Assembly (NCBI GenBank): GCA_004431415.1
Contig: QPMI01000071.1
Span: 310,001-374,000 of the forward strand
DNA from: Cyanophora paradoxa CCMP329
Lineage: Eukaryota; Plantae; Glaucophyta
DNA length: 64,000 nucleotides
Direction: 5' to 3'
The position numbers and the translations under genes were made by a program. This document shows, one piece after another, positions 1-63,233 of this stretch (positions within the stretch are counted from its first letter, which is position 1; each line of letters starts with the position of its first letter). Under the pieces are notes generated by a model, which worked only from the letters and a program-made list of their open reading frames with translations, was not told the DNA's origin and made no database searches.

Positions 1-3000
1 CTTCGGTATGACGAATCGCGTTCCCGAGACACTTTACGTCTACACGGCAGACTACGAGACACAGGGTCAGCGATCAGCGCTCAGCGACCCTCTGCAAATT
101 ATCACAGCCCATCGTGCGCCGACGCTGGCATGGGTGCAATCTCGTGCAACAGATATCAGAATCAGCATAATATCAGCCGGCGGGTCATCTACAGCTCCCA
201 TCGCGCAAACAATGGTATTTAAAGATGGAGTTCTGGTGTTTACTTACACTGACGGTGCACTGGCCGAGTATGTGGACACTAGTGTGGTACCTGGGCGTCA
301 GTATGCATACACGGCGCGTTACATGGGTGCAGGCATTCCAGGGACAGTGCTCGACAGTACAGGCACCTCTATGACACGCGGCGAGCTTTCGTCGAGTCTC
401 GTGGCAACCGCGGCTCCCGCAAAGCCACAGATCTCGCAGGGCGATGCCGCCTCGACCGCCACCTCTGTCAGCGTCAAGATCAGCCTGCCCAGCGACGGGA
501 GCACGTCGCTTTACAACGGGACCGAAGTGTACCGCAACGGGACGCTCATAGCCACGCTCCAGAAGAATGTGCTGAACTGGACGAGCACTGGCCTTCAGCC
601 TGGCACCTTGTACATCTTCCACGCCGTGCTGACGACAAGTGAGACCAGACTGCGAGTTGTCTCCGATTCGTCGGACAGCCTGGAGCTATGGACCGCCCTG
701 CCTGCGCCTCAGCTGGCCATCGATGGCACTACACCTGTACCGTCGGTTACCGTGAACGTTCCCCTGCCTCCGGGGCTTGAGAGCACCGTCGTGATGACTG
801 TCTGCTGGGAGACCTCGTCCCCAGATTTCACCTTCTTCGTTCTCAATGAGCAGTTCTTTGTCTCAAGTGCACCTGGTGATACGGGCTACACGGTAGACTG
901 GGCGACAACGTACGTCTGGAAGTGCGTGTTCGAGGGCTTGGGTGGCACCACGAGCGCGTCGGGCTTGGTCAGCGTGACGCTGCCTCCAAAGGCTCCCATC
1001 ATCACAATGAGGGCAGTATACTCTGCAGCAATTAATGTGACCGTCGACATCGAGAACCACGCTGCAAGCAAGGCGCTTGCTACCGACTACCAGCTGACAT
1101 GCAACGACACAAACACGGCACGCACGGTTGCCATTGTGCTGAGCGGCCCGTCGCTGGTGACCCTAGCGGGCTTGCAACCGATGACCACGTACGCATGCTG
1201 GGCGAAGGTATCGTCATCGGCGGGCGACTCACGTAACTCGAAGACCGCGTCTGCAATAACAGATAACTTGCCAGAGCCGACCGTGAGGACGACCGCCGTC
1301 AACGCAACGGCGGTATGGGTCGAGGTTACACTGCCGGAGCTTCAAGCCCAGGTCAAAGTTTCAGGCGTGCGGATCTCCCGGGCCATGTCCAATGCGACAG
1401 CGGGGGGCGCCTGGGCAACCGTTGTGACAATCTCGACGGCGGACACCGACGGCAAGTACCGCCACGTCGACGGGGGCCGCGCCTCACAGACGGAGTACTG
1501 GTACAAGGCGGTGTACCTGACGCCGTCGGCCTCGAAAGAGAGCGCGACGACAATGGCCCGCACTGGCCCACCGGCAGCCATTCTTTCGTTGAACTACATG
1601 AAGGCCTACGAAGTGGCAGTGAACCTCGTTCAGACCGGTCTCAGCACGCAGCTCGTCTCCGGAACATACATTAGACGCAGCGGGACGCTTGTCTGCTCCT
1701 CAGCCACCGGCATGATAGCCTCGTGCCTGGATAACACCGAAGCGATCAGCCCCGGTGTCACGTACGAGTACACGGCGCAGTACGAGGGGCGGGTCTTTTA
1801 CGAAGGACAAGAGCGCAATGAGCAGGGGTTGATCTCGGCTCCGCTCTCCTTGACAACGCCGCTGGTGGCGAAGCCCGTCATCTCGTACCAGAAGATCACC
1901 GCGACGACTGCAGAGATCTGCGTGACGTACCCGGCAGACGGCAGCCACAAGGAAATTGTCACGACGGAGTTCTCTCGTGTATACCAGCCGACAAGCACAG
2001 TCTCCACTTTCCGGATCACGAAGGTGAATGTCACCAAGGACTGCGTGACGCGTACGGGCCTGGAGCCGGCGACGACCTCGAGTCTCACGGCTTACTACAC
2101 GACAACGGGCGCGAACTCTCTAGTCTCCGACGTCCTTCAAGTGACGCAGGCAAGGCCGGCGGCACCCTCTCTGTCTGTGGGCTTTGTGGCAGCGTACGAA
2201 AACGCGACGACCGTCAAGATTCAACTCCAGTACCCGAATTTGCCATCCACGCCAAGCATGCAGACCGACCCGCCAGAGAACCTGCTGGCGGTCGTCAAGC
2301 GAATCGACCTGTACCGCGATGGGTACTTAGTGGAGTACATACTGGATCCGAGCAGCAACTCCTACGTATTCACCGATGCCGGCCTGCCTCCGGGCCTGAC
2401 GTTCGGCTACTGGTCTTTCCTTTTCACGACATACGCACAGTCGGACAACGGCTCTGTGTCTGCGACGACGGCTGTTGCGGAAGCACCGACAGTGGCGGCC
2501 TCGGGCATCGATGCCACGTCCGTAAAAGTGACGGTGGCGAAGCCCGTGCCCGAACAGGCGGCCGCGGTCGCGATTCGCATCTACTCCGCGACTGCGAGTG
2601 CGGGCCCGTACACTTTGCTCACCAGTATCAGCAAGTCGTCGCCAACCTACGAGTACACTCACAGTGGCCTGGAGGCCGGCACGCAGTACTTCTACAAGGC
2701 GGACTACACAACAGCCGGCAAGCCTAATTCCAGGGCGGGCCTGGACTCGAAGATAAGCATCCCAGACTCGGCGTGGACTTCCCCGAATCCGCCCGTCCTG
2801 AGCTTGATCTCATCCACTTCTTCGACCGCGGGCACGTCGACAAACATCATTCGCATTGCACAGTCGACGTCGGACAGCGACGTCAGCAAGCTCGTGCTGG
2901 AGCGCGTCAGCGGAGGGCACAGCTGCATCGAGACCTGGGAGTACCTTGGAATCACTGGCTCGATTTCTTCGGACTACACGGACACCTCGGCGACGCCAGC

Positions 3001-6000
3001 CACGACGTACACCTACGTTGCTTTCTACGTGGGGCAGGAGAACATGAAGAGCACGAACGTGAGCATCACGTTGACCACGCCAGCGCAACCACCGACGGTC
3101 GTCAAGGGGCCGTACCCGGCGACGAGCTCGTTCGTCAGCGTGGAAATAGAGCTGCCGCTGGGCTGGGAGAAGAGCAACGGTACCGAGTTGTACCGAGACG
3201 GAGCCGGGCTGATCTCAACAATTCGAATCACGTCGTCCAGCTGCGGGCCATGCGTCCGAGCTGACGTTCTCAGCGGCTGCTGCCTTCGGTACAATAACTC
3301 CGATCTACTTGCGGGCACTCTCTACAGGTTTTACGCCGTCTTGACAACAAATGAGACCAGAGTGCGAGTTGTCTCCAACTCTTCTGAAAGCCTCGAACTG
3401 TGGACAGCGCTTCTCGCGCCGACGCTCGTGCTTGTCAACACGTCCACCCAGCCCTCTCTCACTATACAGGCGTCGCCTCTGGCTCAGTTCACTTCGCTGG
3501 TCGTTGCCACTCGCTGCAAGCGGGATGCAGGCGCATACTCGGATATTACGGGAGGGTACCTTGTGGATGCACAAGTGGCGTATTCGACAACGTACACGTA
3601 CAGCTGCGTCCTCGAAGGGAAAGGCGGTACCACCAGCGAGCCCGGCAGCCTCAACGTCACGACACTCCCGTCGGCGCCAGTTCTCACGCTTGTCGCTCTC
3701 AACTCCACGAGCCTTCATATATCTGTCTCGGCCACGGACAGCGCGACCTCTGGGCTGTGGAACACGGCTAGCATCGATTGCAACGGCACGACGTACACTG
3801 CAACTCGTGCTCTTCCGCAGGCGATTGCGACCGGCCTGCTGCCAGCCACCGTCTACGCCTGCCAGGGACGCTTGAACTCGTCCGCGGGGTCCTCGGCCTG
3901 GTCGACGGCCTCCACTGTGACGCTGCCTCCTGCAAAGCCATCCCTCTCGCTGGCGCCGCTCAATGCAACGGCTCTGCAGGCGACTGTGACAATCAGTGAC
4001 GCAGCAAGCGCGGCTCTGACCAACGGGACAGAGATCGTTTGCAACGGCTCCGTGGGAACCATCCACCGGCCGCGTGGCGAGCTCGTCATTGACCTTTCAT
4101 CGCTGCTTCCGGGGACGGCTTACCAGTGCCAAGCTCGGCTGCAGTCAACAGCAGGGCCGTCAGAGTTCTCGGCGGCTGCAACGAACACAACGCATCTCGC
4201 GCCAAAGCCGACGGTCACACTAGACGATTCTCGGCACAACGGTCAATCTTATAGCGTGTACCTGTTTGTGCGAGTGCCGAACACGGCAGGCGTCGTTGTT
4301 GGAACCGTAAACTTGTATCGGAACGGATCTATCCGTACAACATTTTCAGTACCTGCGAGCGGATATCTTCTCATCACTGACGTATGTGATCCTGAAACGC
4401 TGTACATCTACACGGCGGACTACGCGACTCAGGGCCAACAATCAGCGCTCAGCGACGCTCAGCACGCCATCTCAGCCCATCGCCAACCGACGCTGGCGCT
4501 GATGTATGCTCGTTCAACAGGGATTCAAATAAGCATCACACGAGCCAGTGACTCACCTGTGGCTCCGATCGCACAAGCACTCGTGTACAGAGACGGAGTT
4601 CTGCTGACGAATTTCACTGGCGGGTCACTGGCCGAGTACGTGGACAACAGCGTGGCGTCTGGGCGTCAGTACGCATACACGGCGCGTTACTTGGGTGTAG
4701 GCATTCCAGGGACGGTGCTCTTTGTTACAAATAGCTCCATGACACAAGGCAGACTTTCCTTGAGTCTCGTGGCTACCGCGGCTCCCGCAAAGCCGCAGAT
4801 CACACAGGGCGATGCCGCCTCGACTGCCACCTCTGTCAGCGTCAAGATCAGCCTGCCCAGCGATGGAAGCGCATCGCTTTACAACGGGACTGAAGTGTAC
4901 CGCAACGGGACGCTCGTAGCCACGCTCCAGAAGAACGTGCTGAACTGGACGAGCACTGGCCTCCAGCCCGGAACCTTGTACAGCTTCCACGCCGTACTGA
5001 CGACAAATGAGACCAGATTGCGAGTTGTCTCCGATTCGTCGGACAGCCTGGAGCTGTGGACAGCGCTTCTCGCACCGACGCTCGTGCTTGTCAACACATC
5101 TACCCAGCCCTCTGTCACGATACAAGCGTCGCCTCTGGCTCAGTTCACTTCGCTGGTCGTTGCCACTCGCTGCAAGCGGGATGCAGGCGCATACTCGGCC
5201 ATAGCTGGAGGGTATCTCGTAGATGTACAAGTGGCGTATTCGACAATGTACACGTACAGCTGCGTCCTCGACGGGAAAGGCGGTACCACCAGCGAGCCCG
5301 GCAGCCTCAACGTCACGACGCTCCCGTCGCCGCCAGTTCTCGCACTCGTTGCTCTGAACTCCACGAGCCTTCATATATCTGTCTCGGCCACAGACAACGC
5401 GACAGCCGGACTGTGGACCACGGCTAGCATCGTTTGCAACGGCACGACGTACACTGCAACTCGTGCTTCTCCGCATGCGATTGCGACCGGCCTGCTGCCA
5501 GCCACCGTCTACGCCTGCCAGGGACGCTTGAACTCGTCCGCGGGGTCCTCGGCCTGGTCGACGGCCTCCACTGTGACGCTGCCTCCTGCAAAGCCATCCC
5601 TCTCGCTGGCGCCGCTCAATGCAACGGCTCTGCAGGCGACTGTGACAATCAGTGACGCAGCAAGCGCGGCTCTGACCAACGGGACAGAGATCGTTTGCAA
5701 CGGCTCCGTGGGAACCATCCGCCGGCCGCGTGGCGAGCTCGTCATTGACCTTACATCGCTGCTTCCGGGGACGGCTTACCAGTGCCAAGCTCGGCTGCAG
5801 TCAACAGCAGGGCCGTCAGAGTTCTCGGCGGCTGCAACGAACGCAACGCAGCTCGCGCCAAAGCCGACACTTAGCCTGACCGACGTGAGCAACGACACCG
5901 TCTCCCTCCATGTGCAGGTGCCCGTGACAGCGGGCGTCGTCGTTGGCAACGTAAGCGTCTATCGCAACGGATCTGCCACGCCGTTCGCAACCGTGGCAGC

Positions 6001-9000
6001 GTCTACGACATCTGTCGTCGATGTGGGTCGCATTCCGGAGATGCTTTACTTTTACACTGCGGACTACGCGACTCAAGGCCAACGATCAGCGCTCAGCGAT
6101 CCTCAGCAGGCGCTCACCGCTCCTCGCGCACCGACGCTGGCGCTGGTGCAGTCGCGTGCAACAGATATCACAATCAGCATCACGCCAGCCAGCGGATCTT
6201 CTACGGCTCAACTCACGCAGACCTACGTGTACCGCGACGGAGTTTCGCTGTTTAACTTCACTGGCGGGGCGCTGGCCGAATACGTTGACGGAAGCATGGT
6301 GCCGGGGCGCCAGTACGCGTACACGGCGCGGTACTTTGGGGTCGGCATTGCTGGAACAGTACTGGCGAGCACGGGCAGCGCCCTCTCCCGCGGTTCCCTC
6401 TCATCTGTCTTCCTTGCCACGGCGTCTATTCCGCAGGCGCCCGTTCTGTCCGTGGACTGGATTACTCCATCGCAAGTGAACATAACTGTGAGGTACCCGA
6501 TCGACGGGAGCGCTTCAGTTGTGACGGGCACCAATCTGACCCGTTCGGGCGCTGGTGGCGCAATGACGGTGCTCCTCGCTCAAAACGTGACGTGGTTCCT
6601 CGACTCGGGTCGCGTTCCGGGATCCAGCGCGAGTTACACTGCGTTCTTCACGACGGTTTGGTCGCCATCAAATACGTCCAGCGTTCTAACCGTCACTCAT
6701 CCGGCCCCCGACGCTCCTACACAGTGGCAGGTGGTGGTGGAGCCTCCGCACACCGCCACGCGGCTGTCCTTCAATATCGTGTTCCCTACTGACGGGAATA
6801 TAAGTCTTTCGTCGTTCATCACACGCGTCATTGTCTTCCGCAACAACACGGCGCTCCGAACGATCTCGACGAACGGATCACAGATCCTCGCTCCGTGCCC
6901 GTCGTCAGCATCTGACTCCTGTGCCGGAGTGACCTTCGTGGACGACGGGCTGCCTCCAGGGAGAGCTTTCGTTTACAGCGCCCTCGTGTCGACGGCGTAC
7001 ATCAACTCGTCGCTCTCGTCGCCCCTTGTCCTGTCGACCCAGCGGCCGGACGCACCCACCATGCAAGGCTCGTCGACGGTAAACTCGAGCGCCATCGCTG
7101 TGTTCGTTGCGGGGGTGCCGCCAGCAAACTTCTCTGCTGTACGTGTTGGATCCCTTCGCCTGTACCGCAACTCGTCGTTGGCGGTCACTGTCGTTCCTCC
7201 GAACATCAACTCGACGCTGACAAATGTTGTCGACTCGGGCCTCCTCCCCGGTCGACTGTACACCTACGCGAGCGACTACACAACGAAGAGCGCGGACGGC
7301 ACAGTAGCCGGCGCCGACTCGTTGCTCAGCTCTTCGATTGTAGCGTGGACGGCGCCGACTGCGCCCGTTATTAACCATCTGCCGGGTTCAGCGTCCACTC
7401 TCGGGGTTGTAGTCTCCATCACGACTCCCACCGATGGCTCCGCCGGCGCCATCGTGTCTGCAACGGTCCAACGAGCGCCTCTGAACGAAACTATCTGCAC
7501 GAGTGACAATGCCACCTTTACGTGTTCGGACGCATCGAGTGTCTTTCTTCCCGGGCGCTCGTACACGTATCACGCGTTTTACGCCGGACAGGGGGACACG
7601 GTCAGCGCCGTCGCATCGTATTCTGTCCCCATCCCGGCGTTTTCGAGCGTGGTTCCCAACCGCGGGACGGCCGACCAGAACTCTGTGCACTTGTTCGCTC
7701 CCTCGAACTCCTCGTGGTCGTTCTCTTTTCCAGTCCGGAGCGCCGCTCAAGTGCAGGTCGAGCTTTGGTCGAACGGCGCTCTTTTTACTATTCTCGGATC
7801 GCAAAATGCTTCGACGGGCTGGTTCGTCTGGAACTTCGAACGGGAATTCTTCGGATCCTGCCAGTGGCAGGCGGTCACATTGAAGAGCGCACAGTTCGCT
7901 CTAAGCTGCGGTAAGAGATTGCATTTCAATGGCTTGTGCGTGGCCACATCGCTCACCCCGGGTCCGCTTGCAGGGGGCTCTTGCGCGGACGGTTGCTCCT
8001 CCGCTTCTGCTGGGCTGCAGCTTGTCGCGCGCATCGTTGACGAGCCTCTCATGACATCCAATACAAGCGTGGCCCTCTGGAGTGAGTATCAATTCCATCC
8101 GCATGTCACTGGTTCAAGCTTGACGTCGGCTCAGATCCGTACATCTTCAACGTCACGGCTGTTGGCCTGCTCGATGCCGAAGTCGCGTACTACAACCGCT
8201 CCATTTCCGTCACGTGGTCGTACGTTACGAATGTGACAATGGAGAACCGGACAAACGTGCGTGCGTGGGCCGCGCTGCACAGCGCGGAAAGCGGAGAAAC
8301 GGTCGTGAATTGGACATCGGTGGCGGCAACGTACTCGGCCGCTGCCGGAGTAGCCGCGGCCACGTGGACGGTGCCGACATGGCTGAACACGTCCGTTGCT
8401 GGCTACCGACTGCGCGTGAGCCGCTACGCCGTCGATCTGCTTGGGCCGGACCCCTCCGTTTGGGCCGAGAGCGCCGAGTTCGTCGTGAGAGGTTTGCCTT
8501 TTTTTGTCGGGACACTGCTGTGCTCGCAGCTGACGTCTCCGCAGAGTATCGGCTGTTCGCCGGAGATGCCATTGTTGACAACATCGCGTCGGGCGTGCGA
8601 GTGAAGTGGCGCCTGTACGGCGTGCTTCTCGAGCCGCTGCTGATCTGGCTGCGCTACACCAACGCATCCTCCTCTTCCGACCTCGGCCTTGTATCGGACT
8701 CTGCTGTGGCGTCGCTCGAGTTCATTGACTGGCCGGTCGCTCTCACCGCCGGCCTGCTGCCGGTGCCTTCGTTTACTACGACGGCCCTTCTCGACTCTCT
8801 CCTCGCACAGTACGGCGCGGGCCAGCTCGAGTTTGTCGTGTCGATCCCGAACACGACCGCGAGCGACGTCGTCCTTCCCGTGTCTCAGCTGTACAGTGCG
8901 CCTCTATATGCTTGAGAAACAATGCTTGGCTCTGACTCCTGCGCCAGACCCAATCGTGCAGAACGTGTCGATATCGAATGGCTACACGGATACACATGTT

Positions 9001-12000
9001 CTGCACGGCAGCAGCATCGTGATTCGATGGGAGCACCTGTTCGCCGCAGGAGACCCCACCGCAGCTCTGAACGAGAGCGCTACGTTCGATGTGCGGCTCT
9101 ACAAGTACCCTGCAGAAGCGCCGCTCGTGGAGCTGCTGAACATCAGCACTTCGGCGCCGCGCTCTGCGAGGCTGGGTCTGAGCTGGGTGGTGCCCGTCTC
9201 CGTGCCTCGCGGCCAGTACTTCATTCGTGTCTCTCAAATTGTAGCGGGAGCTGTAAGCCCCGCGATATTCCGAGACAGCGCTGCGTTCGACGTGATCCGT
9301 GCGCGCCAAGTAGGATTATTCGCACTCGTGGCTTGACTGACTGCACCACACAGCGGCTGTCCTGAGCATGACTGTCCTCGGCAGAAACTCCACCCAAGTG
9401 GCATCCATGCATGTCTTCGGCGTTGTCGCGATCTCTTGGAGCTGGCTTGGCATTATCCCCAGCCCTGGAACCCTTCAGCTTGAGCTGTGGACGGCAAACG
9501 CGACGGGATTGATTCAGCGGCTGGTTACCATTGCGACCGGCCTCGGGAATACCACCAAATCGTTTGCGTGGACCCCGTCCAGCGCCGTGTTGCCCTTGCC
9601 TGGCCCGACCTCGACGACGGCCATGGCAGCCTTCTACTCCCCCGCCAGCCTCCGCTTGGTGCTCTCTGCCACATCGGACTCACTAACAGTGACAATCAAC
9701 CGCTTGACTCTTCAGAGTGAGCTTTTCAATCTTGTGTCATGTGCCCCAAGCGCTCTTTTTGACGCACCCTCGACGCCAGATCCGGTGATCTCGTCCGTCT
9801 CTCTGAGCGGACTCTACCAGGATTCACTTGCGTACACGAACCTCAACGTGACGGTGCAGTGGTCGTACACCCGCCCGCCCACGGACTCGTCGACGCAGGC
9901 CCGCTTCACGCTCGCCCTCGTCGACCGCAACGCGTCGGCCGTCGTGGCCGTCATCGCGTCGAACGTCGCAGCGAGCACGCCCAACGCCACTTCGACAGCG
10001 CGCTACGTATGGCAGGTTCCCTTCGGGTTCGCGACCGACTTCTACAGCGTCCGCGTCTCGCTGTACAACGCCAGCGCGCAAGCTTCCAGCGATGCGATCA
10101 TCTTCGCCAACTCTTCTTCGTTTTTCATTCAGCGTGCGTCTCTGCCCTCAATTATCTGCCCTTTTTGCATGCTAGAAGCTTATCCCGCCCGTCCTTCAGC
10201 CGGCGTCATTCTTGTCTCCATCTTGCGACCGCAGCCGAACACGAGCTTCAACATCTTCAACCCCATCACAGTCGAGTGGCGCGTGCTCGGCCGGCTGCGT
10301 GGCTCGAAGCTCGTCAACGTTACGGCTCGGGCCGCCCTGCCTGGAGGGCCGCTCGGCCCCGAGGTGCCCGTCGGCCCCGCCGGCTCGGCCCTCATCGGCG
10401 ACGGGGTCCAGCGCGTCGCGTGGCGCCCCGGGTCGCGGATCCTCCCCGCGCCGCTGAGCAGACCTCCGCCCGCCCCGTACAACGTAACCGTCACAGTGGT
10501 GTCGCTTGACGAGTTATCGCTGCGCGGATCCGCGAACGGCACGCTCGGCGGTGCGACCGCGTTTCGTAGTTTCGACTATGCCAGCTCGATGAAACGCCCC
10601 TCGCAGCGCCCTGGGCGGAGACTGTGCGCAGCGCTCCGCGCGTGATTGGCCGCGTGACGTTCCTCGTCGAGAACGACTCGTGGGCCGTCTCATGGCGCTG
10701 GTCCTCCAACGATTCCTACGCCGACGAGTCGCTTCCGTCATCCCTCCGGTGGAACATCGACGCCGTCCCTAGGCCGGCTCCCGGCGGAGATGCAGCCAAC
10801 GCAACCACGAGGCGCCTTGCGAGCGGTATTGCTGCTACCTATGCAGACGGTGTTTACAGCTACACCGTCCGAGTGCCGAGCGATCTGAGCTGGGTAATTA
10901 GAACTTCGTTTCATACTTCAAGGAAGACCGTTTCTAATGGCTTCGTAGGGCGGGATGTACGTGCTGCGAATCTTGCGGGTAGAAGAGGACACGCAGGACG
11001 TTCAGATCTGGGCCGACACGACCGAGTACGAAATACGAAGTGCGTGAATTTGGTAATTGGAGGATATAATACGAGTACGCTCACAGCCGTCTTTCTGCAG
11101 CCGATGGATACGTCATTACCGTTCCGCAGTCGTGCGTCAACATCGCGCAAACAATTCCCTTGTCGTGGCTGGTCGTCGGCAACCCGGGTGGTACCGTCGA
11201 TCTGCTGCTGCGGAACTGGAGCGCCCCTGCAACGTCGGATGACGGCGTGATCCTTTTCGCCACATCCATCAGTGCGACCGCTGGGGCGGGCTCCTATCAG
11301 TGGGCGCCGAACCGCACGAGGCTGCTGGAGCTTGTCCGGGCTGTGCCGCCGCGATCCGCGGTGGACGTTTTCGGTGCCGAAGGCAGCATCATCGTTCGAT
11401 CTACTTCGGCGCCTGATCTGCACTTCATGGAGGCTGCGATCTGTTTACGCAGTGCGCTTTGTTTGTTGAGCGCAATTGCTAGATAATGCAGCCTGATGGC
11501 TATGTTCTACTCACTCTGCTCCCAGCTTCGTACATCTCGATCCCGTACACCGGAGTGGGCATGGCGGTCAACTACGGCGGCGTTGCCTTCCTCAACTCGT
11601 CGCGGACGGCGTACTGGAACTCATCGGACCCGGAGCAGAGCGACGGGCTCGGCTCGCGCACCCGCCCAGTCAACGCGTACCTGTGCGCTCAAACGCTTCT
11701 CCTTCGCCCAATGAAGCGCATATCTGATTGCCGAGCAGGCGTTTCCAAGGCCAGGGACAGCAACCCGTCCTGCTTGCCTCGAACAAGTCGTCGCCGTTCA
11801 ATTTCACGATTCCGGCCGGCCTGCTGGAAGGCTCCTACAGGCTCCGCTTCTATCTCACCGGCTCCGATCTGTCCGACGACGCTAACGTGTTCGCTGACGG
11901 CCTGCCCTTCACGCTCAACGGTGCGCACTCTTTGCGGTTCTATGAGCTCCAGGGTTCACCTTGCCCGGTCTTCATTTGTAACGCGATTGCTTGTAGGCAC

Positions 12001-56558: not shown

Positions 56559-57959
56559 GCGCAACTGCAACGTTAACTGCAGCTGCGCTCGCGCCGGCCG
56601 CGGTGGATGCTGCAGCTGAAGTCGGCTGCGGGCTGTGTATGCACGCGGCATCTCTCTGGATGTGCTCCGAGGCTCCGCGCCGACGTCCGAATTCATGATC
56701 AGCTACGGTCGGCCCGGCGGTCAGTTACGTTGCGGGGATCAAGCGGCGCCTGCAGCTGCAGCTGCGGAGAGCACTGCCGCATTTCCCGCGCGAACCGCGC
56801 GTGTGCCGCCGCGCGCGCCGGAGCGCTAGCCAGCGTGTGCGCCGTAGGCGCGCCGGCGGGCCAGGGGTCCTGCAGCTGCGCCACTGCGCCGCGCGCGGCT
56901 GCTCGGGTCTCGGAGTCCGACGGTCTCTCGTGCTCTGCAGCTGCGATCTGCGCGAGGCCGCCGGCGCCGGCTCCGGTTGCGAGCCCTCAGCGGCTGCAGA
57001 TGCGCATGCTGCCGGCCGTGCCAAAAGGCTACCGGTATAGCCTATAGGCTATAGCTAGCGCATCCAGGCTGATATCGATGAGCTTGCGCACTGCGGCCGG
57101 GCATCATGGCATGTGCGCACTGCGCAGGCGCCGCAGCTGAAGGCATGCGCAGCGCGCAGCTGCTGCGCCGCCTGCGCGCGCCCGCCGCCCAGGCCATGGA
57201 AGGCTGGAAGGAGGAGCTTCCTGAATAACCCGCTGGGTACACCCGACTCGTGACCCGAGTCGGACCAGCCAATCACAGAACAGTCTATCCCTGCCAATAC
57301 AAATGCGACCGAAAAAAGCTCTTTATTATTAGTGGCCGGGCCGGGCCGCCCGGGGTACGGGACATCGACCTACTACGTACGGGCCGTTTTTGTTTTTCAA
57401 GTAACTTGAATTTCTTTTCAAGTTTTTTGTTTTTTTTCAAGCTCTCTTTTTCGGGGGCTGAAGGCATGCGGCCCGGCTGCCCAGGGCCCAGGGGCCCATG
57501 GGCCATGGGGCACAGCCGCACAGCAGGGACAAATCAAAGAAAGTTTTGTTTTTGGTGAATTGCCGCCCAATTTATATAACAAGATCCGTGCTCCTGCGGA
57601 GCACTAAGTACGGCGAAGCCTCGCGGACGCTCTCGCGGCTGTCACAGTAGGCCTTGGCAGCCTAGGCCTAGCGCACTGGCCAGCGCGCTGCCCGGCCAAA
57701 TGGCTGGCTGGAATTCGAAGCTGGCGGCCGGGCCATATATATGCATGCTGGCTCGCTAGCTATATATATAGCCAGAGGGCTGGGGGACGAACCTGGCTGG
57801 CCAGAGAGGAATGTAATGATCGAGGAGCTAGAGGGAATTTATAATTAGGGGAGGAGTTGGACGTACTGGCTTGCTTTTAACTGGTGGAGCATATTGAGAG
57901 GAGATTTTATGTATTGGCTTGTGCACGTGGGGGGGGTGGGAGCCCGAGGATCCGGAGGG

Positions 57960-60900
57960 GCGAGGTTCTTGCAGCCAGGCGCATGCGCAGAGCTTGCCAA
58001 TCGCTTAAAAAGAATCTCGCATGCATATAGTACCAATGTGCAGGGTTGCGGAGGCGAGGGCGCGAGGAAAGACGTGCAGGTCCATGCAGGATCGAATTTT
58101 CAGGGTCGGCTGGATTCTCGCGCCCTGTCGCGTTGTCGGGGGTCGCAAAAAGCTTAACGAAGATGTCAAATTACTATTGTAGCGATGCGCACGCGCGAGG
58201 ATGCGAGGGCGCGCGGAAAGGTCTGCAGGTCTGTAGAGGATCGAATTTTCGGGGTGGGCTGGGTCCTCGCGGCCCGGCGCAGCTATAAAGCGTGCGGAAG
58301 GCTTCTTCTACATCTCAAATGCTTATGCTATTGTTCCGCGCATGCGCCGCGGCATGAGTGCGCGGAAAGATGTCCAGGCCGGTGCAGGATCAAATTTTTG
58401 CCGTCGGGTACCTTCGTGCGCTGTTCGGCATCCGAAAAGCGGATTTCGTGGGTGCGCAGGCCCTGCTATGTCTATGCGCGCCAGTGCGCATCGATTGCGC
58501 GCGTCGCGGGACCGGGTGGGACCGGCCGGATCAAATTTTCGGCCGACTCTTCGCACTGGAGCGTCGACGGCGCCCGAAATCGAGCTTGCGGCGATGCGCT
58601 CGCCCTCGCGCGTCATTCTGTATCGGTCTGGGGCGTCCCTGGCGCGGTTTCGTCGCGGGACCGCGGAAAGGTCTGCAGGTCTGTAGAGGATCGAATTTTC
58701 GGGGTCGGCTAGGTCCTCGCGGCCTGGTGCATTTATAAAGCGTGCGGAAGTCTTCTTGTACATCTTAAATGCTTATGCTATCGTTCCGCGCGTGCGCCGC
58801 GGCGCGGGCGCGCGGAAAGATGTCCGGGCCTGTGCAGGATCGAATTTTTGCTGTCGGGTACCTTCCTGCGCTGTTCGGCCTCTGAAAAGCGGATTTCGGG
58901 GTGCGCAGGCCCTGCTATTTCTATGCGCGCTCGTACGCATCGTTTGTGCGCTTCGCGGGACCGGCCGGAACCGGCCGGATCAAATTTTCGGGCGACTGTT
59001 CGCACTGGAGCGTCGAGGGCGCCCGAAATCGAGCTTGCGGCGATGCGCTCGCCCTCGCGCGTCATTCTGTATCGCTCTGGGGCGTCCCTGGCGCGATTTC
59101 GTCGCGGGACCGGGCGGGACCGGGTCCCACCTTCTGACTCGGACTGCATTTGTCGGAGGTTAAGTACCGGAATTGATCCAGAGGGAAATTCGATTTTCGC
59201 GGGACGCCCACGGGGAGCGGTCGTCTTAGGGGAGCCAGGACGCTAAAAATGGATCTAGAGAGGTCTGTGGGGGTTCGGGTGGGTGTGTGACTAGCGGCAA
59301 TCGCGTCCGTGTCGAGGCAGAATTAATAATTCTGGCTCGAGGGAGTGCGACACGGAAATTATTTAGCAGGGGGGATCTCGAGTGGAAAAAAAGGTTAAAA
59401 AAGGAATTTAGATCGTCGGTTTTTGGGTTTGAGACAAGATCCGTGCTCCTGCGGAGCACTAAGTACGGCGAAGCCTCGCGGACGCCCTCGCCGCTGTTAC
59501 AGTAGGCCTATATATATAGGGCACTCAGCGACTGGCCAGCGGCCTGGCCGATCGCGAACAGCTTTCTGCAGCTGGCTGGAAGCTGGCTGGCTGACGGCCA
59601 GTCCAGCTAGCGCTGGCCGGCTAGAGGAATATTAATTTACTGAGGAACTAAAGGGTGGAGCAGATTGAGAAGAGATTAATTATAATATTGTTGGGAAGGA
59701 GGCCCGGGAGGGGCGAGGTTCTCGCGGCCAGGCGCATGCACAGAGCTTGCGAATCGCTTAAACAGAATCTCGCGATCGAATGTATATAGCATCGATGTGC
59801 GGGGCTGCGGAGGCGAGGGCGCGCGGAAAGACGTGCAGGTCCATGCAGGATCGAATTTTCGGGGTCGGCTGGATTCTCGCGCCCTGTCGCGTCCTCGGAG
59901 CTCGCGAAAAGCTTAACAAAGATCTCAAATTACTATTGTAGCGATGCGCACGCGCGAGGATGCGAGGGCGCGCGGAAAGCTGTGCAGGTCCGTATACGTA
60001 CAGGATCGAATTTTCGGGGTCGGCTGGGTCCTCGCGGCTCGGCGCATACGCAAAGCGTGCGGAAGTCTTTGCCTACATCTCAAATGCTTATGCTATTGTT
60101 CCGCGCATGCGCCGCGGCGTGGGCGCGCGGAAAGATGTCCGGGTCCGTGCAGGATCGAATTTTTGCCGTCGGCTGGGTTCTCGTGCTCTTTCGCGTCTTC
60201 GAAGCTTGTGGAAGGCTTTGATAAAATCTCAAATGAATATTGTAGCGATGCGCATGCGCGAGAATGCGAGGGCGTGCGGAAAGATGTTCAGGTCCGTACA
60301 GGATCGAATTTTCGGGGTCGGCTGGGTCCTCGCGGCCTGGTGCATTTAGAGACCGTGCGGAAGTCTTCTTCTACATCTAAAATGCATATGCTATCGTTCC
60401 GCGCATGCGCCGCGGCGTGGGCGCGCGGAAAGATCTCCGGGCCTGTCTAGGATCGAATTCTTGCCGTCGGGTATGTCCAGGATCGAATTTTTGCGTCGGC
60501 TGGGTTCTCGTGCCCTGTCGCGCCTGCAGAGCTTGCGAAAAGCTTTAAAAAGGAGTCAACTGAAAATTGTAGCGATGCGCTCGCGTGAGGATGCGAGGGC
60601 GCGCGGAAAGTTGTGCAGGTCCGTCCAGGATCGAATTTCCGGGGTCGGCTGGGTCCTCGCGGCCCGGCGCATTTAGAGACCGTGCGGAAGGCTTCTTCTA
60701 CATCTCAAATGCTTATGCTATCGTTCCGCGCATGCGCCGCGGCGCGGGCGCGCGGAAAGATCTCCGGGCCTGTCTAGGATCGAATTTTTGCCGTCGGGTA
60801 CCTTCCTGCGCTCTTCCGGCTCCGAAAAGCGGATTTCGGGGTGCGCAGGCGCTGCTATGTCTATGCGCGCCCGTACGCATCGATTGCGCGCGTCGCGGGA

Positions 60901-61070
60901 CCGGCCGGAACCGGCCGGATCAAATTTTCGGCCGACTCTTCGCACTGGAGCGTCGACGGCGCGCGAAATCGGGTTTGCGGCGATGCGCTCGCCCTCGCGC
61001 GTCATTCTGTATCGTTCTGGGGCGTTCCTGGCGCGATTTTGTCGCGGGACCGGGCGGGACCGGGTCCCAC
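57960..61070. repeat. Internal ~149-bp tandem subrepeats of the Helitron-like elements
   Basis: The core GGATC(G/A)AATT occurs at 58089, 58238, 58387; 58688, 58837; 60003, 60152, 60301, 60450; 60628, 60777, all in 149-bp steps. Copy A also has a 450-bp higher-order duplication (58238 vs 58688). Confidence 0.9.
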
Positions 61071-61391
61071 CTTCTGACTCGGACTGGATTTGTCGGAGGT
61101 TAAGAACCGGAATTGATCCAGAGGAATATTCGATATTCGCGCGACGCCCACGGGAGAGCGGTCGTCTTAGGGGAGCCAGGACGCTAAAATTGGCTCTAGA
61201 GAGGTCTGTGGGGGTTCGGGTGGCTGTGTGACTAGCAGCAATCGCGTCTGTGTCGAGGCAAAATTAATAATTCTGCCTCGAGGGAGTGCGACACGGAAAT
61301 TATTTAGCAGGGGGGATCTCGAGTGGAAAAAAAGGTTAAAAAAGGAATTTAGATCGTCGGTTTTTGGGTTTGAGAAAGAGGCTTCGCCTGA
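59435..61391 (-). mobile_element. Non-autonomous Helitron2/Helentron-like element, inner copy B (1,957 bp), nested in copy A
   Basis: Same termini as copy A: 5' 16-mer at 61376-61391, hairpin at 59443-59459, CTTG end at 59435-59438. Removing it restores copy A's TCAGGCGAAGCCTCTT^TCTCAAACCC with no duplication. Confidence 0.8.
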
Positions 61392-61432
61392 AAGAGGCTT
61401 CGCCTGATTTATATAATTACCGGCCACATGTA

Positions 61433-63219: not shown

Positions 63220-63233
63220 ACCGGCCACATGTA

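Follow-up and report, generated by a model that had tools for sequence, protein, structure and literature searches.

A nested pair of probable Helitron2-type elements with a doubled 5' terminus, flanked by a 9-nt direct repeat, in Cyanophora paradoxa

Helitrons with more than one 5' terminus have been described in Fusarium oxysporum. The 5' end of FoHeli1 starts with TCAGCC-GAA-GGCTG and that of FoHeli2 with T[c/a]AGTCC-GAA-GGA (Chellapan et al. 2016, PMC5148889). Some FoHeli copies carry two to five 5' termini, which have been ascribed to self-insertion near the 5' end (PMC5148889, PMC13342296), and in a 2026 study single FoHeli1 copies had as many as five of them (PMC13342296). From Metarhizium, a nest or tandem of three copies is known (PMC5148889). 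Here we analysed a 64,000-nt stretch of the Cyanophora paradoxa CCMP329 genome (contig QPMI01000071.1, positions 310,001 to 374,000; hereafter the window), which harbors two related elements, copies A and B, with copy B nested close to the 5' end of copy A. Coordinates are those of the window, and both copies are read on the minus strand.

Canonical Helitron1 elements start with TC, end with CTRR, insert between A and T, and possess neither a 5' hairpin nor an inverted repeat. Cut-and-paste transposons that generate target-site duplications (TSDs) carry inverted repeats at both extreme ends and produce a TSD of fixed length with each copy (9 bp for Mutator-like elements). Elements of the HLE2 type, as summarized for HELIANO, are characterized by short terminal inverted repeats, a 3' stem-loop, and insertion between two T residues (PMC11417382). 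The Helitron2 elements of Chlamydomonas reinhardtii insert without duplication after TTTT or T-rich tetranucleotides, including TCTT, and before T or C (PMC3627910). Many copies of CRe-1, CRe-2, and CRe-3 are flanked by variable duplications of 7-19 bp (Bao and Jurka 2013, PMC3627910). HINE/DINE-1 elements combine a partly palindromic subterminal repeat 2-4 nt from the 5' end with a 3' palindrome 8-35 nt from the other end, and they carry tandem repeats in their centre (Thomas et al. 2014, PMC4067079).

Layout, ends, and interior of the nested pair

The nested pair is a real and well-defined architecture (Table 1). The order of its parts is 16-mer, 16-mer, body B (1941 nt), and body A (1855 nt), and the exact positions of the 16-mers and the 3' ends agree with the order given in the initial annotation of this DNA. 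The 16-mer TCAGGCGAAGCCTCTT occurs twice in tandem (61407-61392 and 61391-61376) and nowhere else in the window, where no third site was found even with up to three mismatches allowed. The 25-nt 3' end, which comprises the hairpin and GGATCTTG, is also present twice, ending at 59435 and 57580, where none would be expected by chance, and again no third site with up to three mismatches exists in the window. Body B (61375-59435) directly abuts body A (59434-57580). No 16-mer is found at this junction, which reads CTTG/TCTCAAACC, with body A starting at its nt 17. If the first 16-mer is rejoined to body A, the product matches copy B over 115 nt without a single difference. Excision of 59435-61391 therefore restores a complete copy A, as had been predicted. 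The presumed insertion point of copy B lies between nt 16 and 17 of copy A, at CTCTT^TC and in the same orientation, 2 nt beyond the 5' inverted repeat and mini-hairpin of copy A. The inner copy lacks a TSD, and its junctions share only a 2-nt TC ambiguity. In this comparison of two copies, the similarity between A and B ends sharply at TCAGG and CTTG, both at the two junctions of copy B and at the outer junctions of copy A. A BLAST search with copy B against the whole window did not reveal a third copy of the element.

Table 1. Features of the nested pair and its immediate flanks, in 5' to 3' order of the minus strand; internal features of the two copies follow
Feature	Position	Strand	Details
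9-nt direct repeat TTATATAAA on the 5' side, putative TSD	61408..61416	-	abuts 61407
5' 16-mer of outer copy A	61392..61407	-	T, CA, 11-nt 5' asymmetric inverted repeat 61404-61394 including the GCGAAGC mini-hairpin, TT
Inner copy B, complete, 1957 nt	59435..61391	-	16-mer 61391-61376, body, 3' asymmetric inverted repeat 59477-59467, hairpin 59459-59443, GGATCTTG 59442-59435
Remainder of outer copy A, 1855 nt	57580..59434	-	3' asymmetric inverted repeat 57622-57612, hairpin 57604-57588, GGATCTTG 57587-57580
9-nt direct repeat TTATATAAA on the 3' side	57571..57579	-	abuts 57580
Central tandem array of copy B	59810..60797	-	149-nt unit, 327-nt higher-order unit, ~3.2 copies
Internal repeats of copy A	58204..58953	-	~450-nt duplication of satellite and 5'-region sequence, arrangement unlike B
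29-nt near-perfect palindrome	61253..61281 (B); 59312-59340 (counterpart in A)	-	~110 nt from the 5' end

The termini of the element are TCAGGCGAAGCC at the 5' side and GGATCTTG at the 3' side. Both 16-mers contain the 11-mer GGCGAAGCCTC, located 3 nt from the 5' end (2 nt if the first T belongs to the host), and its exact complement is found in both copies 32 nt from the 3' end (59467-59477 and 57612-57622). By a rough estimate, the chance of such an 11-nt perfect inverted match between end windows of 16 nt and 60 nt is ~7e-5. This asymmetric terminal inverted repeat (ATIR) ends, at its 3' partner, 7 nt upstream of the 3' hairpin in both copies, so that the spacing noted initially holds for A and B alike. 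The 3' hairpin consists of a 7-bp stem with a GCA loop, is located 8 nt ahead of the end with its CTTG terminus, and is identical in the two copies. For the 5' 16-mer, the fold AGGC-GAA-GCCT that had been drawn previously was also obtained as the predicted structure, with -2.1 kcal/mol under generic DNA nearest-neighbour energies. Its core, GCGAAGC, is an experimentally characterized, "extraordinarily stable" DNA mini-hairpin with a melting temperature of 76.5 C and a sheared G-A pair (PMC13037366), and the 3' loop, C-GCA-G, is the stable form of the GNA triloop (PMC3201870). GNA triloops are present in both hairpins (GAA at the 5' end, GCA at the 3' end) and on the same strand, as would suit an enzyme that recognizes only a single strand. 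The 5' hairpins of the locus (GCGAAGC, 61376-61407) and of FoHeli1/2 (CCGAAGG) all belong to the GNA-triloop mini-hairpin class. Such mini-hairpins combine extreme stability with an occurrence at single-strand replication origins (PMC13037366), a link of which the Helitron papers compared here make no mention.

We also joined the 3' and 5' ends of copy B in silico. The joined ends are predicted to fold with -25.0 kcal/mol (z -3.3), a value matched by only 1 of 300 shuffles. In this predicted structure the two 11-mers pair, the resulting ATIR stem surrounds the 3' hairpin, and the CTTG/TCA junction stays unpaired. Further inside the element, both copies contain the 29-nt palindrome listed in Table 1, with 14-nt arms, an AT-rich centre, and one mismatch per copy at differing arm positions; it may represent a second cis-acting hairpin.

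The ends of A and B are identical over the first 115 nt, 99 of which belong to the body, and over the last 51 nt. The interiors are clearly different. Over the ~670 nt that follow the identical 5' stretch, A and B differ by ~7.7%, and at this divergence the chance of a difference-free run of 99 nt in the body is ~4e-4. The last 200-290 nt ahead of the 3' repeat are rich in indels, and the central repeats are arranged differently in the two copies (Table 1). Because identical ends are improbable at such an interior divergence, the ends seem to be constrained, as expected of cis-acting termini. If a local duplicate had decayed neutrally, its ends would have changed as well, which favours two separate family members. 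This points to A and B being two independently transposed members of one family rather than the product of an in-place duplication or an assembly error.

The element is non-coding. None of its ten open reading frames (ORFs) of 111-175 amino acids gave a credible Pfam match, and in none of the long frames do the 55 substitutions that distinguish A from B over the 5' 780 nt favour a particular codon position; we therefore rejected a coding capacity. Exact protein look-ups with the element ORFs were blank, and a homology search with the 172-amino-acid ORF gave no match. Between 58654-59434 and 60594-61375, the substitutions comprise 22 transitions and 33 transversions, an unusual excess of transversions, and they lack a transition bias of the type caused by CpG decay or by repeat-induced point mutation.

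Flanking repeat and relation to described families

The composite is bordered at each of its outer ends by the 9-nt sequence TTATATAAA. Only these two occurrences exist on either strand of the 64 kb (0.04 expected), and the repeat extends to 10 nt if the first T of the element is included. On the 5' side the flank ends with GGCCGGTAA followed by TTATATAAA, while on the 3' side TTATATAAA is followed by TTGGGCGGCAATTCACC and an A-rich tail. As judged from these sequences, the repeat is a putative TSD or at least behaves like one. The absence of a TSD claimed in the initial annotation was therefore confirmed only for the inner copy, since the outer boundaries carry a perfect 9-nt direct repeat. 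The same division applies to the proposed T^T targeting: the inner insertion occurred at TCTT^T, but the 5' flank of the outer insertion ends in A.

Just beyond the 9-mers we found an imperfect 12-nt direct repeat, TGGCCGGTAATT and TGGGCGGCAATT (10/12 identical; 61417-61428 and 57558-57569), a sequence that is part of the tail motif of a poly(A) retroposon. This repeat may have been left in the retroposon tail by an earlier event, as a duplication or footprint, or it may form part of a longer target duplication that has decayed and contains AT-rich filler. The retroposon itself is a strongly pyrimidine-rich unit of 1.79 kb (63219-61433) that ends with GGCCGGTAATTCACC and A11 and is flanked by TACATGTGGCCGGT at 61419-61432 and 63220-63233, likewise on the minus strand. 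With its poly(A) end and 14-bp TSD, this unit is a retroposon, and it inserted into the tail of an older member of its own family. That older tail also holds the Helitron-type pair, 12 nt downstream of the unit. The window contains no empty paralogous site; the other retroposon copy, at 63.2 kb, does not serve as one, since its similarity is lost shortly ahead of the insertion point.

Both copies probably belong to one non-autonomous Helitron2/HLE2-type (HINE-like) family, with copy B nested in copy A. Nesting is favoured because a single event yields both the doubled 16-mer and a B/A junction without a 16-mer. The assignment to Helitron2/Helentron elements made initially from the ends agrees with the published definitions, which include asymmetric repeats and a 3' hairpin (PMC3627910, PMC11417382). 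For HLE2, a 5' inverted repeat of 8-16 nt within 0-2 nt of the 5' end (2-4 nt for HINEs) is typical, and the 11-mer conforms to this. Its 3' partner is subterminal, at 32 nt where ~20-30 nt are expected, and lies just upstream of the hairpin. The predicted 5' hairpin involves the 5' repeat, and the 3' hairpin is found near the terminus. T^T insertion without a TSD is seen at the inner copy; the outer copy differs in this respect.

The 5' end resembles that of FoHeli1/2, as had been noted initially for the TCAG start with a GAA loop and for the multiple 5' ends; both features are documented in the literature on these elements (PMC5148889, PMC13342296). The locus shares with FoHeli1/2 the TCAG start and a short stem with a GAA triloop within the asymmetric repeat (12 nt in FoHeli), reading TCAGGC-GAA-GCCTC here, as well as a partner repeat and hairpin some tens of nt ahead of the 3' end. 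In contrast, the 3' terminus is CTTG instead of ATATTTT, and the duplicated 5' piece measures 16 nt instead of 31-85 nt. Both bodies are still in place, presumably the parent state of the exported, two-headed elements known from Fusarium. Moreover, the element is non-coding and satellite-bearing, the pair is located between 9-bp repeats, and the host is not Fusarium but an organism with ~60% GC and giant-virus-like genes nearby.

With the Chlamydomonas Helitron2 elements (Helitron-1N1_CRe and CRe-1,2,3), the locus shares the ATIR, hairpins at both ends, and the 5' T, as judged from the published descriptions. The inner site TCTT^T agrees with the T-rich tetranucleotide targets reported there. 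The Chlamydomonas TSDs are mostly associated with truncated or irregular 5' ends and follow a T-rich tetranucleotide, whereas the 5' end is regular here and the repeat follows GTAA. The resemblance to HINE/DINE-1 elements (PMC4067079) and to satellite carriers of the oyster (PMC7492417) lies in the central repeats, which make up about half of the element, the non-coding state, and the T-rich target. The positions of the subterminal repeat and of the 3' palindrome are shared as well. HINEs, however, possess T runs at both boundaries and a 3' repeat 38-60 nt from the end, compared to CTTG and 32 nt here, and they leave the target site unchanged, unlike the outer 9-bp repeat described above. Canonical Helitron1 elements resemble the locus in the 5' TC, in the hairpin that closely precedes a CTxx 3' end, and in the A^T context of the outer junctions. 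We rejected this class, since the element terminates in CTTG instead of CTRR, possesses both a 5' hairpin and an ATIR, and made its inner insertion at T^T. For cut-and-paste elements we found neither inverted repeats at the extreme ends nor a TSD at the inner copy.

Several observations weigh against the assignment to a Helitron2/HLE2-type family. An outer 9-bp direct repeat is atypical of Helitrons; such repeats are known only as the variable TSDs of some Chlamydomonas Helitron2 derivatives, mainly copies with irregular 5' ends (PMC3627910). The outer 5' flank ends in A and not in T (...TAAA^T). The 5' hairpin is short and non-significant under generic nearest-neighbour energies (z -0.9). No RepHel gene could be linked to the element ends, and no further occurrence of the termini was found in the window. 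The evidence comes from a single locus, which makes the termini, the target preference, and the form with a single 16-mer provisional. Exact searches of metagenome, GTDB, and viral contigs with the 3' end (25 and 23 nt) and the 5' end (23, 20, and 18 nt) gave no true match. Two 20-mer matches (L001:11109-11128 and L002:582-601) were discarded as chance hits, because the sequences around them resemble each other but not the element. These two metagenome contigs share ~100 nt of flank and probably represent the same, presumably bacterial, gene.

Alternative explanations

Bodies B and A could also form a head-to-tail dimer, generated by rolling-circle replication, recombination, or read-through, with the loss of one 16-mer and the slippage of another as separate events. 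Tandem Helitron arrays are documented, circle replication has been offered as an alternative for the three-copy tandem of Metarhizium, and the program TRF scores the 16-mers as a simple tandem repeat of 2.1 copies. But such a dimer requires two further events of exactly equal length, with 16 nt deleted at the junction and those very 16 nt duplicated at the outer end, while the junction of a true concatemer, CTTG/TCAGG, is absent from the locus. The combination of ~8% divergence and big internal rearrangements with identical ends is also better explained by two separately selected family members. We therefore regard a dimer as unlikely. An assembly artefact, in which two separate family copies were misjoined or a repeat was mis-expanded, might come to mind for ~1.9-kb repeats with internal satellites, which are hard to assemble. 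A and B are clearly distinct sequences, though, and a false join driven by homology predicts a hybrid copy and not a clean succession of two 16-mers, body B, and body A with exact ends. Together with the matching 9-nt flanks around the composite, this makes an artefact extremely improbable.

The perfect 9-bp direct repeat at both outer ends could be explained by a rearranged pair of non-Helitron transposons that generate 9-bp TSDs, either Mutator-like elements without terminal inverted repeats or members of an unknown class. A transposase gene linked to the ends was not found in the window. The ends, however, are not inverted repeats of each other: the repeats are placed asymmetrically, 3 nt and 32 nt from the respective ends. 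The inner copy, moreover, lacks a duplication. Its 3' hairpin with the short tail, the 5' T, the GAA hairpin of the FoHeli1/2 type, and the central satellite typical of HINEs all indicate HLE2, and variable TSDs have been reported in Chlamydomonas Helitron2 derivatives (PMC3627910). A non-Helitron origin thus appears very unlikely, and a nested pair of Helitron2/HLE2-type elements is the explanation we prefer.

Possible route of self-insertion, surroundings, and significance

Starting from the observed layout, ends, end conservation, non-coding state, and flanking repeat, we infer an enzyme, a circle, and an order of events. A RepHel transposase encoded elsewhere would nick the hairpin-bearing strand at the 5' T, unwind the element as far as the 3' hairpin, and cleave after CTTG. 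The ends would then be joined into a single-stranded circle, in which the 11-nt repeats could pair and expose the CTTG/TCA junction in a loop, and the circle strand would be transferred to a target rich in T. One such target may be the T-rich tract that immediately follows the element's own 5' hairpin, and self-insertion there would stack the 5' ends. In a later round, as in the FoHeli model, use of the leftmost 5' end together with the first 3' end could export an element in which two 5' termini precede a single body. Entry into the AT-rich retroposon tail, with a 9-bp duplication, would have been made by the composite or, at an earlier stage, by copy A alone.

The initial annotation went further and suggested that the transposase retargets its own binding site, which would explain the stacked 5' termini. 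Such retargeting is not needed here. Copy A contains 13 T[CT]TTT pentamers on the same strand and 3 on the opposite strand, in addition to ~200 TT sites, and CTCTT^T is one of these ~16 T-rich pentamers that fit the Helitron2 preference (PMC3627910). A single insertion at one of ~16 candidates is thus unremarkable, and one case cannot establish a preference for self-targeting. Self-insertion as the cause of stacked 5' termini is not a new idea either, as it has already been published for FoHeli (PMC5148889, PMC13342296). What is suggestive is that the insertion position 2 nt past the repeat stem mirrors the cleavage site 3 nt before the stem. One could imagine that RepHel bound to a resident 5' mini-hairpin and ATIR directs an incoming circle to a position 2 nt past it, with staggered nicks during integration leaving the 9-bp duplication, but we consider this rather doubtful. 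If true, RepHel-directed self-insertion would be site-specific and build stacks of 5' termini, and site-directed nesting together with the 9-bp duplication would be a footprint of target choice by a eukaryotic HUH transposase.

Further away from the nested pair, the window contains a 425-amino-acid ORF (9368-10645, plus strand) with a Kre9_KNH domain, whose nearest Atlas clusters are named "EsV-1-163" after the Ectocarpus virus type (score 0.89). It neighbours an intron-less ORF of 2742 amino acids at 8-8236 (plus strand), in which an fn3 domain was recognized. As a lead only, an integrated giant-virus (phaeovirus-like) segment may make up the left part of the window; by itself, such a segment would point to a brown alga or another stramenopile as host. 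An ORF of a long interspersed nuclear element (LINE) gave Atlas matches to Chlorophyta, which serve as a lead only. Rfam and tRNA scans of the window had no matches.

The locus is an instance, in another lineage, of a published self-insertion phenomenon, and the central idea of the initial annotation is not new. One locus of this type is helpful for annotation rather than surprising, and the 9-bp flanking duplication is of moderate interest. The value of the locus lies in providing a clean, presumed parent state, with both bodies still nested, for the Fusarium-type Helitrons with multiple 5' termini, and this from a very different, GC-rich genome. The TCAG-NN-GAA-NN mini-hairpin is a 5' end common to distant hosts. 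With the 9-bp flanking repeat, Helitron2-type elements located between putative TSDs would be known from a second lineage besides Chlamydomonas. If many nests with the same offset exist in the genome, they would bear on the target choice of RepHel and on the formation of Helitron-type arrays.

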